Shown piece by piece: positions 50,807 to 56,229 of a DNA stretch of 64,000 bases. Source of the stretch: Pavona decussata (Eukaryota); assembly GCA_977016875.1 (NCBI GenBank), contig CDRNST010000096.1, positions 558,001-622,000 on the forward strand, in the 5' to 3' direction. The translations under genes were made by a program, and so were the position numbers. The notes under the pieces were generated by a model. It worked only from the letters and a program-made list of their open reading frames with translations. It made no database searches and had not been told where the DNA came from. The number at the start of each line of letters is the position of its first letter. Positions within the stretch are counted from its first letter, which is position 1.

Positions 50807-51777
50807 AATGAATATTTATTTAACTTAAACTTATATGTTACATGTTTACTTGCCAAGTGGCATTACCACTTAAATGAGAAACATACTACAGTACTATTAA
50901 ATTTTGCTTCTGAGCATTAAAAAATATAACCTGAGTTTTCTTAATAAATTTTAAAAGTAATTAAATTTCATGCCCTGCTATCTAAACATGTTTCTTATTC
51001 TTACTTAAAAATAATAAACTATATACATGACATTTTACTTTGAGTCCATACTTTATATGTGGCTTTACAAGCTTCCAATTTGAAATAAACAGTACAAAAA
51101 AATTTTGCATGCAAGCACAGAAATTCCATGTTGATGTTGATAAATAAATTCTGAAAAATATCAAATACTGCATTCTGCTACTATTATGTGTTTCTTATTC
51201 TTACTTGGAAATTGATAAACTATTTTAAAAATCACTGTTAGGTATATGGGATGTTTGTTAATCTTCTCTGAGCTGTGTTTGTGTCGAAATGACTATTTAT
51301 TTAACTTAAACTTATATTTTACATGTTTACTTGCCAAGTGGCATTACCACTGTCAAATGAGAAACATACTACAATACTATTAAATTTTGCTTCTGAGCAT
51401 TAAAAAATATAACCTGAGTTTTCTTAATAAATTTTAAAAGTAACTAAATTTCATGCCCTGCTATCTAAACATGTTTCTTATTCTCACTTAAAAATAAATT
51501 AAACTATATACATGACATTTTACTTTGAGTCCATACTTTATATGGGGCTTTACAAGCTTCAAATTTGAAATAAACAGTACAAATAAATTTTGCATACAAG
51601 CACAAAAAATTCCATGTTGATATTAATAAATAAATTCTGAAAAAATATCAAATATTGCATTCTGCTACTATTATGTGTTTCTTATTCTTACTTGGAAATT
51701 GATCAACTATTTTAAAAATCACTGTTAGGTATATGGGATGTTTGTTAATCCTCTCTGAGCTGTGTTTGTGTCGAAAT
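50807..51777. repeat. ~481-bp tandem duplication of the transposase 3' end and 3' UTR
   Basis: AATGA.TATTTATTTAACTTAAACTTATA.. at 50807 and 51288; both copies end CTCTGAGCTGTGTTTGTGTCGAAAT. Confidence 0.92.
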
Positions 51778-54700
51778 TCGTGGGTAGTTTTTGGCTACTT
51801 GTTGTTTGCCACCATTGCACCAGAAGGCTTCATCCTTTTTTATGTACTTGCGGGGCTGCCTCTCATACTCTTCTAATGCCTCTTGACGCTTCTCAACGAG
51901 GAGGACACTTGTGCTTGCATCCCACCTGTTTATCTTGCGGTGAAAGAAACGCCGCATGTCATCGTTCTTTTTTTCTACACCTGGTAAGTAAAAGATTTAA
52001 CATTTGTTACTTTTTCAGTTAATGGGAAAAGGGCTGGATTCAAGCATTTAAATGAACCTATATTATCTTAGCTTAAAGAAAAAGAAAATGAAAAGAAAAA
52101 CAGTCAAAAAGTACCTTGGCCGCTAAATTTCTTCAAGGATCCATGCATTCTCATCATGGTGGGGACGTGAAACACTAAGATGTGCATGTACGGGGTTATA
52201 ATGGTTTGATCCAAGTACCCTGCACCACTGCCAGACATGCTAACCATCAGCTTCCCCCAGTCTCTTGCCTGTTGGTAGAAATATTTATATGTTAACTAAA
52301 ATTAAACACCAAATGTTATACTTTGAATAAGTCATAACCACAGACACTCATCCTTACCTTTTCTTGAATACGATTGATGTCCTCTTCAGTTGGATCTGGA
52401 TTGTTTATCAATTCCAGCACCTCTCTGAACCCCTAAAATAAAAACAGTGTTACGTTTTTAACATGTTTTTGCATACAATTCAATTCAATTCATTTATTTT
52501 GCCATTAACCAAAAAAATACAACATAAAACATTAATATTGATACACTATTCCTTCTATTACAATATTCTTACTAAACCATTTACAAGATGAAATGTGTTA
52601 AAGGCTAGGAAGCCTATATAGAAGCCTGAGGTTTATTAACTATAGGCTTTCTGGAACTATTATTTAGGATAAACCATAGAAGTTCAGGGTACTGAATGAA
52701 ATTCCAATATACAATACAATATTGTTTACTTTACATTTAGATTTTACATTTACTATCTATCTAAATAATGAGGTAATGGACTTTTGTATGTGATATTCTG
52801 TTACTTACATTCCATAGTTTCTGAACAGCAGGGGCTTTGTCTTTAGGCAAGACCTTGTCGAATTCGTCTGGCAGCTTTTTCAGGAGCTTTCGCTTTTCTC
52901 CAACCATCAATGAGGTCCATTCATACTTCTTCTTGTTGTCAGCAGATTTCCAGACGTCAAGGGAGACACCCATGGATCGAATGGTTGAGAGCAGAGTTTC
53001 CAGGTGGGTTTGTTTTCTTTGTGATACAGGCTTTCCTTTGTTTTCAGCCTGTAATAAAAAAGTTGTTGAAAGTTTATAAGTTAGGTGTAAATTTGGGAAG
53101 GTTTGAACCTTGTTATTTCTTTGTAAAGCCAAAATGATTCACTCACTAAAGGCTCAACCTGAATCTGCCATAATATGGTACTTTATACATACCTCATCCC
53201 AGTCAATGACCTCAAATATTATGCCTTTCTCCAGCCGGTCAGTTACTCGGAGCATTAGGTGCAGTTCATCAATGACGATATCTTCGAGGGGGATTTTAAA
53301 CAGGGGTTGGTGCCCACATCCTGGATCTTTGTGCCAGTTTGGTCCAAATTGTCTTTTCATTCCTTGAGAGTTGTAGTGCAAATAATCCACGGACATCTTA
53401 CACCTGTAAAGACAATAATGGCTATTTAAAATCTCCACAGAATAGTTAATAATTTGTTCATATATTATATATGTTAAGTATACTTTCTAAACGTTTTCAC
53501 ATGCAACTTGTTCTTTGACACACCTACCTGTCTTTTTTGTGGATCAAGCACCAAATGCAGGAATTGTTTGACGTTGCCCCTTTCATGCCCATTGCAAGTA
53601 ACAGGAACTGTTTGAAAGAAACAAAATACATGCATGTTTTATTTAAAAAATGCTTAATTAAGGGGGACCACTTCTGGTTGTAATGAATTTGTCTTAGCAA
53701 TAACTAGGATTACATACCTTGTAATCCCCTCCCAAATGGAAATGTAAGTTGACTCTTCTTCCATCAATGATCATGTAGCCATCATCTATGAGGGTGTTTA
53801 CAGCATCAATCACATTCTTGAGACCATCTGATAATGTGCCATGGTCTTCAGGTCCCTTGACTACAGCAATGGTGTGGTTCCCTTAATTAAAAAAAAAAAA
53901 TGAAGATGACATCTCAAATAATCATAAGTGATACTGATTTGGTCAGTTAAAATAAATACTTTAGGCAGTATTTTACGAAGTGAAAGGTGCTTAAAAGAAA
54001 ACAATAATTTAATCGATTGATATTTATTGTAACACTGACAATGGATCATTGATGCTCATCCGAAACATGTTTGAAGTATTCTAAATGATGTCTTTCAAAA
54101 GCATCATGTCGTTTTTGAGAACCATTTTCTTTTGCAAAGTCACCAAATGTCAAAACTCCATAGAGTACACATCGCAATATCTATAATATTATTATATTTG
54201 TTGAGAATACCTGAACTGGACAGCATATGCTGGCCTTCCTCAAGCAGTGAAAATGAACAGACAAACAGCGAACTCGAGTGTGACATCCTGGCCCCATCCC
54301 CTGATATCTTGACCTTTACCGTTGTTTCTTCATCATGTGTGTTAGTAAGCTGTAATTATGAGACAAAATTTAAAAAATATGTATGAGGGATTATTCAAAA
54401 CTAAAGTTAAAAGTGCTAGCTAATAGTGTGTTTAAGATAATGTATACCTAGCAAATTGTCCTTTGTACTTACATATTTTCTTAATTCCTTTTCCAATAGA
54501 ACCTTGAATGGGAGTTCTGCTCCTGGGCACTCTCCAGGTGTCCTTGTTACATCCCATTTATCATCAAGGGACTGCTGGCAGGCCTCAATCAGGTATGATC
54601 TTGGTAGTGTTGGCTGTTGTTGCGACAATTCATGATACGCTTGTATCGACACTGAAAATTTATCCATGATATACAGGATGGACTTCACTTTGTTTTTCTC

Positions 54701-56229
54701 TTCTTCTGGAAGGGTGTGAAAAGATTGAGCCTTCCTTGCTGTGGTTAAACAAAATGGCAGCCATCAATGTACTATCAAGGATGATGTTCATCAATAGGGA
54801 TAAATAGTAAAAATGAAGACATGTACAATTTATGATGACTGATTAAACTGATATCAAAGTCAGTATCAATGATTGTTATTGATTGTTCCTGTTTATTAAG
54901 AAATTTAAAAATTTGGAAGTTCTGCCAGCATGCAAAGAAAGTCATGTCCTCTAGCCCAGGGCTAGAAAATTTTGAAATTTTCTTAAGAGGTTAACTAGTC
55001 AGATGTGTTATATCGTGTTCAGGAAAAACAAGTTATTGCAAGTTTTTTGGAACTTCTTCCTGCTTGTTTCACCTTAATCCTTTACTCCATCATTTAATTA
55101 CCAGTTGACATTTTTTTTTTCAGGCTAGTTAAAATGACTTTCGGGCTAGTACATGCTAGCCACTGTAAAGCTGACTTTCTTTGCACCCTGTCTGCCATTG
55201 CCCTGTTGCTATCCGGTTGACTCACCTTTAGGACTTTCTGCCTGATGTTCTTGCTCGTCTCTATGGCATTCTGAGCTTCCTTCACTGACAAGAGTATTTT
55301 CTTTTTCAGCATCATCTATCAAGTGAGAGAAGATAAAACAGTTAAACCTGCATTTGCTGAATCATTTTCTAGTTGTTTGTATGCATAATACTAAATGGAA
55401 AAGTTAGTTTACCTGTTTGAGTCAAGTTTATCTCATGGGCCATTCCATTTCTGTCTTGGAGCATTAATGACTGGGGGATTAGGCCATATGTTTCCCCAAA
55501 CCACAGGGCGTCTTGAGCTTTATTTCTTCCGGACAAAAAAAAAGAATACAGTGTAAGCATTGAGATATAAAAACTAAGTCCCTTGAAGCACTGCATGTAC
55601 GTGTCATAAGCATTTTAGAGCTGTCCTTGGTAACGGAATTAATTACTTGGTTACTGTTTATATTGGTTTTAAGATTAAACGTCTACTTACTTTATTTCCT
55701 TCAAATGTCTGTATTTCTGTCTAATGCCGACATCGGTGAAGTCTTTGCCAGTGTGTTGAAGTTTTTCTTTCATCTCCTCGTACAAACTAGCCGCTTCCTC
55801 TTCCACATTCCTGCCATCCGCTAAAACATCGTTCGGAGTTCGCTCGACCTCCTCTGGTTTTATGGCCAGTTTCAACCAAGTCTCTGCTTTCAAGCGTTTT
55901 CTCTTTTTTCCGTTCTTGGTGGTTTGAATTTTCATCCAAAATCGCCTTATGCTTGTGCCGATTGCTCTCCCAACTCGCTCTTCAGCAGATGCCATGAGTT
56001 GGTACCCAAGAGGCAAGATGCTCCGTTGGAGTAATTGAAATACTGTTCGTGGCTGCCAGTAGACTTCTCGCCATTTGTACGCTACCTCCCCGTTCAGCTG
56101 AAGATAGTACATCGGGTCATTTTCGTCTGCAAATGGAGGTACCATGTGAAAAAGTAACGGATTGATCGGGTTGTCAAAGAGCTCTGAAAAGAGCTCCCGA
56201 TCACTGACGTTTTCCATGTTTGTATTCAT
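51745..56229 (-). CDS. Spliced RAG1/Transib-like DDE transposase, 12 exons, ~768 aa
   Basis: Hand-spliced exons 56229-55691, 55525-55413, 55315-55226, 54738-54473, 54349-54211, 53881-53718, 53607-53528, 53403-53193, 53048-52809, 52432-52358, 52268-52115 and 51980-51745; all GT-AG, phases compatible, 2307 nt, no internal stop; motifs ISGDG, GGDYK, CIWC, DELH, TPYMHILVFHVP, FSGQGVEKKN. Confidence 0.85.

Follow-up and report, generated by a model that had tools for sequence, protein, structure and literature searches.

A probable autonomous DNA transposon with a 12-exon gene for a RAG1/Transib-core transposase in Pavona decussata

RAG1 is the textbook example of a transposase turned host enzyme. 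To our knowledge, few transposon lineages with the RAG1 fold have been studied, namely, Transib, RAGL, and Chapaev (the last by sequence only). In this work, we analyzed a stretch of 64,000 nucleotides from Pavona decussata (GCA_977016875.1, contig CDRNST010000096.1, forward strand positions 558,001 to 622,000; hereafter the window, numbered from its first letter and free of N). We found that positions 49607-56872 very probably represent a full-length autonomous cut-and-paste DNA transposon with a single 12-exon gene, which encodes a 768-aa DDE transposase of the RAG1/Transib-core type that combines an RNase H-like catalytic domain with C-x2-C and H-x4-H zinc modules. Transib, Chapaev, and RAG1 are relatives of the large and unannotated animal lineage to which the element belongs. 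The coordinates of all features are collected in Table 1.

The transposase gene occupies 56229-51745 of the minus strand, where six-frame translation gives only scattered pieces of open reading frames (ORFs). A sequence-only reading of the window had proposed that 12 GT-AG exons join into one stop-free frame, and a script confirmed this proposal: the joined frame has 2307 nt (768 aa), the sole stop codon is the terminal one, and GT..AG borders are found in 11 of the 11 introns. The intron donors are GTAAGT-like, the acceptors are pyrimidine-rich YAG, and the GC content is 26-35% in introns vs. 45% in exons. Pairwise comparison detected no sequence shared among the introns of this gene; introner-type insertions were therefore rejected as the intron source.

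Transcript support was examined by placing contigs of four public runs (X1, X2, X5, and X13) on 51700-56400. Contigs from run X5, which we can only guess to be an RNA library, skip nine introns with CT..AC borders on the plus strand (i.e., GT..AG on the gene strand), and every joint can be placed on a canonical splice site. Overlapping X5 contigs link exons 2-3-4, 4-5, 5-9, and 9-12, and a tenth junction (51980/52115, intron 51981-52114) is implied by the piece lengths of one 548-nt contig. With this, 10 of the 11 junctions of the sequence-only reading appear in spliced contigs, and the junction between exons 1 and 2 was not seen in contigs of the four runs. We accepted this last junction because it has a GTAAGT donor, the sole in-frame AG, and an unbroken frame in an intron-poor paralog. 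The contigs of X1, X2, and X13 are either unspliced through some introns or represent antisense-spliced pieces.

Two side observations concern the same region. First, contigs from X1, X2, and X5 link the plus strand blocks 52600-53001, 54498-54588, and 55306-55903 through GT..AG joints (53001>54498 and 54588>55306). These contigs pass unspliced through sense introns 1 and 2 and appear to represent a transcript that is antisense to the transposase gene and spliced. Second, short repeats are indicated in two of the longer introns, 9 (52476-52708) and 3 (55035-55163), by spikes in depth and by loose ends, present in every run, and by 90% matches elsewhere in the genome (C204 and C35).

The relatives of this transposase were collected by searches with single exons, paralog ORFs, or natural full-length relatives. 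With the intron-poor paralog L024 (ORFs of 492 and 278 aa) as the query, hundreds of proteins of ~830-850 aa labeled "hypothetical" or "uncharacterized" were retrieved; their sources are Desmophyllum, Oculina, Paramuricea, Dendronephthya, Pocillopora, Nematostella, and Exaiptasia. A family profile built from 34 relatives (A1, 839 positions) matched 9349 clusters (50% identity) in 1.84 billion proteins, of which 919 have E <= 1e-30, and one matched cluster contains proteins from the tick Ixodes scapularis. The window exons 1-12 align in order to positions 67-786 of the 839 profile positions with neighboring exons abutting; exon 3 alone has no match, neither to the profile nor to a paralog on C126. 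Closer full-length relatives of the window subfamily were not found in these searches, and the best match is ~32-37% identical.

The two Asp and the Glu of the catalytic triad, the C-x2-C cysteines, the DELH His, and the H-x4-H histidines are invariant among the 34 members, and the window protein keeps all of them (D354, D435, C454, C457, H512, H668, H673, and E693). All seven motifs on which the sequence-only reading had based its RAG1 comparison were found again in the same order, with the three catalytic codons exactly where it had placed them. The C2C/LH/H4H signature that it named is likewise present in the window and invariant in the family. The spacings in the window protein are 19 residues for D435-C454 and 20 for H673-E693, which equal what we take to be the RAG1 spacings (D708-C727 = 19 and H942-E962 = 20).

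The family has an N-terminal extension of ~270 aa that consists of an alpha/beta domain and a coiled coil (the latter in most subfamilies). At the C-terminus, many members have a SAP domain that the window protein does not, and the long coiled-coil helix of its relatives is largely absent from it as well. Exon 1 has no cysteine, as expected from the earlier claim that a RING or other Cys-rich N-terminus is lacking. When folded alone, the N-terminal 275 residues of a relative produced only coiled-coil matches (Z <= 6.9), which arise from the long coiled-coil helix and speak neither for nor against a domain like the nonamer-binding domain of RAG1. The basic GKDF...KEIK segment at the end of exon 1 may resemble that domain, as the sequence-only reading proposed. 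Foldseek alignments are ~90 columns longer for the RAG1 chains that include the nonamer-binding domain, which is suggestive only.

For comparison of folds, an AlphaFold2 model of family member P0005 was used (pLDDT 78, with >85 over most of the core). RAG1, BbRAG1L, and HzTransib account for every one of the top 49 PDB hits in Foldseek (best E 2e-15), and Hermes comes next (E 7e-4). VIA-align of the same model gave Z 27.3 against mouse RAG1 (rmsd 3.5 A over 442 residues, model 270-757 on RAG1 459-1008), 24.0 against BbRAG1L, and 22.5 against HzTransib (413 aa aligned), vs. 12.5 for the P element transposase and 8.9 for Hermes. Based on these scores, a placement with P or hAT was rejected. The structural comparison with RAG1, HzTransib, and BbRAG1L thus gave the outcome that the sequence-only reading had anticipated. 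Similarity to RAG1/RAG1L (ProtoRAG, BbRAG1L) extends from the dimerization/DNA-binding domain to the C-terminal domain (Z 24-27) and includes the DDE triad, C-x2-C, and H-x4-H.

Profile searches point in the same direction. Against PDB sequences, the only transposase-like hits of the family profile are BbRAG1L (E 0.003), zebrafish RAG1 (E 0.005), and mouse RAG1, and HMMER aligns the C-x2-C, H-x4-H, and Glu of the family onto those of RAG1/RAG1L. A single paralog ORF retrieved only coiled-coil hits from the same PDB sequences, and the RAG1 matches required the profile. Of the Atlas neighbors by features and shape, some are RAG1 clusters, one is tagged DUF1280, and the others are unnamed clusters of cnidarians, rotifers, and Mucoromycota; no CACTA Pfam family was found among them. 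Taken together, the model of a relative, the profile, and the motifs group the protein with RAG1/RAG1L/Transib rather than with P, hAT, or Kolobok (the structural comparison covered P and hAT) and support the earlier view of a divergent RAG1-related family. In Pfam, no family was found over the core in any exon, in the paralog ORFs, or in the 34 members. Besides coiled-coil noise, these searches gave only SAP/Rho_N matches at some C-termini, one N-terminal DUF4806 match, and DUF1280 below its threshold.

The gene is transposon-borne. In a DNA search of the genome (602 Mb, 1180 contigs), the flanks 49000-49606 and 56873-57500 directly adjoin each other in many other copies of a Gypsy-like repeat. 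Because these flanks are contiguous elsewhere, 49607-56872 represents an insertion. The boundaries of the element are exact, with no base duplicated or lost: four empty paralogous sites read GGGAAC/GTTGTAC (the slash marks the joint), and the filled site reads GGAAAC-element-GTTGTAC. The retrotransposon that hosts the insertion is Gypsy-like and multi-copy, and its ORF at 56911-57186 contains an integrase zinc-binding H..H..C..C motif. In nine full-length copies of 1.64-1.66 kb, the initial ~940 bp of the element are joined to its final ~690 bp; these copies are classic non-autonomous deletion derivatives. These nine copies are 94.7-98.8% alike, and no two are identical.

No second gene was found inside the element, and only the terminal region and a tandem duplication of ~485 bp follow the stop codon. 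The second copy of this unit overlaps the end of the coding sequence, such that the 3' end region of the gene is duplicated. The duplication was identified by a repeat search; Tandem Repeats Finder reported nothing in the element. A RAG2-like kelch/PHD gene convergent with the transposase was not found within the element either. Some related elements have a second ORF with no Pfam match (L047 9024-9590, minus strand, with matches at L023 1982-2209, L025 7888-8283, L026 389-787, and L048 9668-9931), which is tail-to-tail with the transposase in the clear layouts of L047, L023, and L048. This ORF has no match in the window element or the C126 paralog.

The intron content differs among the relatives. 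The C126 paralog keeps exons 4-12 as separate blocks (60-96% exon identity), distant subfamilies (L024) have one or two introns, and the relatives in Dendronephthya and another anthozoan have none. Because distant subfamilies have zero to two introns and the C126 paralog keeps the exon blocks, the intron-rich state is a trait of the window subfamily. Having 11 introns is unusual for a transposase gene and, together with the exon structure retained in this paralog, could indicate a domesticated host gene of transposase origin that is not part of a mobile element. However, the gene is located inside an element that has terminal inverted repeats, a precise insertion in another repeat, and deletion derivatives. 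Moreover, sequences similar to exon 1 or to the core are present at well over 100 divergent sites in the genome, many with stops (exon 1 has at least 123 matches). We consider domestication highly improbable.

The assembly contains one full-length copy of the window subfamily. In addition, there is a 3.2-kb internal fragment (C334:655562-658788) that corresponds to window positions 53160-56385 with 98.7% identity and one TGA in exon 1. This fragment lacks both ends, and its start coincides with the exact internal breakpoint of the 1.65-kb derivatives. The element may be an inactive relic that retains an open frame but no longer transposes, with the spliced contigs derived from read-through or from another locus; we regard this as a real possibility, if slightly the less probable one. 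Such a relic is consistent with the single full-length copy and the single fragment, the 1-5% differences among derivatives, the deviation of both ends from the family consensus CATCGCG at position 4, the antisense-spliced contigs over the locus, and the X5 contigs that are 95-99% rather than 100% identical to the window. On the other hand, 2307 nt over 12 exons have no stop or frameshift, every invariant residue is kept, both ends are complete, and splicing removes every intron for which it was observed. The grounds for calling the autonomous element potentially active are its intact frame, intact ends, and spliced contigs.

The two ends of the element are built from the same modules with different spacing. 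Each has a 16-bp terminal repeat and an inner GGACAT-type module, which is offset by 0 bp at the 5' end and by 10 bp at the 3' end. Paralogs L003, L005, L006, and L010 and two non-autonomous families share the spacer-free 5' arrangement; the 10-bp 3' spacer is likewise conserved in these two families as well as in paralogs L008 and L009. The 16-mer repeats are perfect in both non-autonomous families. Because the asymmetry of one helical turn is kept in these families and in paralogs with only 45-59% identity in exon 1, it is a conserved rather than an accidental feature. The window element starts with CATAG (family consensus CATCGCG) and has CA..TG termini; the absence of canonical CAC ends noted by the sequence-only reading is therefore borne out. 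In more distant subfamilies, the repeats are symmetric and ~20 bp long and again begin with CAT; these are L023 and two elements of 5.1-5.4 kb without introns in the assemblies of other anthozoans (one being Dendronephthya gigantea). Termini of the CATYRC..CAGAA type are conserved in the distant subfamilies and the two other anthozoan assemblies.

Flanks were compared for 26 insertions (L030-L038, L049-L065, L023, L047, L048, and the window). No consistent target-site duplication (TSD) was found among these 26, i.e., the nested window insertion with its four empty sites and 25 others. A 2-bp match across the site occurs in three of 26, which is about chance, and the nested insertion has a duplication of exactly 0 bp.

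Transib elements have a 5-bp TSD and CAC heptamer-like ends. Like Transib (HzTransib), the window element is a single-gene DDE transposon with a RAG1-type core, but it lacks both the 5-bp TSD and the CAC ends. The family also differs from Transib in its N-terminal extension, and the family profile misses HzTransib in the PDB sequence set. Compared with RAG1/RAGL, the window element has no RING or N-terminal zinc finger, no RAG2-like partner gene, no CAC heptamer (its ends being CAT...), and no 5-bp TSD. The ends do resemble those of ProtoRAG (27/31 bp) and the recombination signal sequences of RAG (12/23), which are also bipartite and asymmetric with unequal spacers, an arrangement proposed to be ancestral (PMC8289069).

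Chapaev is the nearest named group in Pfam terms. The family DUF1280 has been equated with Chapaev transposases and grouped with RAG1 among RNase H-like proteins (Majorek et al., 2014; PMC3985635), and Chapaev/Chapaev3 and the window lineage both reside in animal hosts. The window element could thus be a divergent member of Chapaev (in the CACTA-Mirage-Chapaev assemblage, CMC), with its RAG1 likeness reflecting a fold common to the wider assemblage that includes Transib (CMCT). DUF1280 is the sole Pfam family touched (four of 34 members, best E 0.0027), the best Atlas neighbor has DUF1280 in 16% of its members, and the C2C and H(3-4)H motifs are common to the whole assemblage (PMC12730594). 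However, no DUF1280 match among the 34 members is above the cut-off (best 17.7 bits vs. 25), and the genome has 16 true DUF1280 loci (e.g., C6:3295192-3295482) away from the copies of the window family, such that canonical Chapaev-type elements coexist in this genome. The window element also lacks the Chapaev hallmarks, namely, the N-terminal Chapa zinc finger (PMC4411706), the 3-4 bp TSD and invariable CAC..GTG ends (PMC4079192), and the TWA duplication. Overall, a Chapaev assignment appears rather unlikely. We know of no CMC transposase structure that could be used for comparison.

The CMCT assemblage (EnSpm/CACTA, Mirage, Chapaev, Transib, Plavaka, and ESTA, as well as Lanisha) is characterized by C(2)C/H(3-4)H motifs, CA..TG ends, and 2-5-bp TSDs (Kojima, 2025; PMC12730594). 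The window element shares the C2C/H4H motifs and the 5'-CA..TG-3' termini, but its lineage shows none of the TSDs that the listed lineages make. The PlavakaB ends (CATCA..TGATG) resemble the CATCGC ends of the window family, and the Plavaka Pfam model has no match in the genome. Insertion without TSD is also known for the PIF/Harbinger-related Spy (cited in PMC12730594), but Spy has an unrelated transposase fold and family, and the shared trait would be convergent. Because the defining features of Transib and Chapaev are lacking, we read the window element as a distinct lineage in the CMCT/Transib-Chapaev-RAG1 assemblage and a canonical member of none of its groups.

The sole PF12940 match in the genome is at L046 (C11:1219333-1222596), next to a RING-finger ORF (47-712, plus strand), with kelch-like ORFs at 2056-3044 of the other strand. 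This locus looks like a degenerate convergent RAG1L/RAG2L-like pair separate from the window family, and it was rejected as a relative of the window element. Such a pair has been reported once per genome in some corals (PMC7204232).

Several points weigh against our interpretation of the element as an autonomous RAG1-type transposon. The splice support comes from the single run X5 with its unrecorded library type, and the fold evidence comes from P0005, which is only ~32% identical to the window protein. The RAG1 Pfam models (PF12940 and its subdomains) match none of the window exons, paralog ORFs, or 34 single members even at E up to 10, and the nearest model is the sub-threshold DUF1280 of Chapaev. 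Placement inside the assemblage was set by defining features and is provisional. With one full-length copy and no two derivatives identical, the element counts as potentially rather than demonstrably active. Finally, the base before the element equals the base after it in 14 of 26 insertions vs. ~7 expected. Because this single-base identity is over-represented, a stagger of 0-1 bp is the honest statement. No explanation fits both this excess and the clean 0-bp nested insertion.

Table 1. Features of the transposon and its transposase gene in the window (positions as in the window).
Feature	Coordinates	Strand	Remarks
Whole autonomous element (probable), 7266 bp	49607-56872	-	Nested in Gypsy-like repeat
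Gene-distal (3') end	49607-49643	+	16-bp terminal repeat 49607-49622; 10-bp extra spacer TATTGTTCTT 49623-49632; then inner GTGACATT module
3' terminal region common to 1.65-kb non-autonomous copies	49607-50546		~85% alike
Two tandem copies of ~485-bp unit	50807-51777		93-98% alike; downstream of gene; second copy overlaps last ~30 nt of coding sequence; from repeat search
Exon 12	51745-51980	-	Catalytic Glu E693, GVEKKN, codon 51975-51973, aligned to RAG1 E962-equivalent; holds stop codon
Exon 11	52115-52268	-	H-x4-H zinc ligands H668, H673
Exon 10	52358-52432	-	X5 contigs and joined frame
Exon 9	52809-53048	-	X5 contigs, joined frame, profile alignment
Exon 8	53193-53403	-	DELH motif, H512
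Exon 7	53528-53607	-	C-x2-C zinc ligands C454, C457; 19 residues past D435; aligned to CTLC of RAG1L/RAG1
Exon 6	53718-53881	-	Second catalytic Asp D435, GGDYK, codon 53726-53724
Exon 5	54211-54349	-	First catalytic Asp D354, KISGDG, codon 54298-54296; equals invariant D367 of P0005
Exon 4	54473-54738	-	Profile positions 266-351; inside family-model stretch superposing on RAG1 from residue 459
Exon 3	55226-55315	-	Acidic linker specific to window subfamily; both junctions in X5 contigs
Exon 2	55413-55525	-	Invariant ALWF...GL motif; profile positions 226-262; acceptor without read support
Exon 1	55691-56229	-	aa 1-180; N-terminal region without cysteine; basic GKDF...KEIK segment at end
5' terminal region common to non-autonomous copies	56183-56872		95-97% alike; includes first 46 nt of coding sequence
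Gene-proximal (5') 16-bp terminal repeat	56857-56872	-	Starts CATAGGG; inner GTGACATT module directly next (56849-56856), no spacer

By analogy to RAG1 and HzTransib, a transposase dimer may pair the two unlike ends of the element, which share the 16-bp terminal module and the inner module, 0 or 10 bp apart. Nicking would take place at the CA terminus, the element would be freed by hairpin formation on the flanks, and the enzyme would then join the 3' ends to the target with little or no stagger. This last step would explain the missing TSD.

These findings add an intact and apparently expressed member to a very large lineage that has no Pfam model. The missing consistent TSD, in contrast to the 2-5 bp in every described relative, and the conservation of two bipartite ends, one of which has 10 bp more spacer, both bear on open questions of mechanism. 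Since the gene is intact and short derivatives occur naturally, bench experiments can address how end asymmetry arose and what geometry strand transfer has in RAG-like enzymes, and the 11 introns, compared with none in relatives of other anthozoans, provide a clean case of intron gain or loss in a mobile gene. More tentatively, and with the odds in our judgment against it, the family may represent an as yet unnamed lineage of superfamily rank, sister to Transib/RAG1/Chapaev and widespread among animals, that inserts with a 0 or 1-bp stagger and needs unlike ends with the inner module offset by one helical turn. If true, a 12/23-like end asymmetry would be ancient among RAG1-fold transposases, and the RAG lineage would not have invented it.

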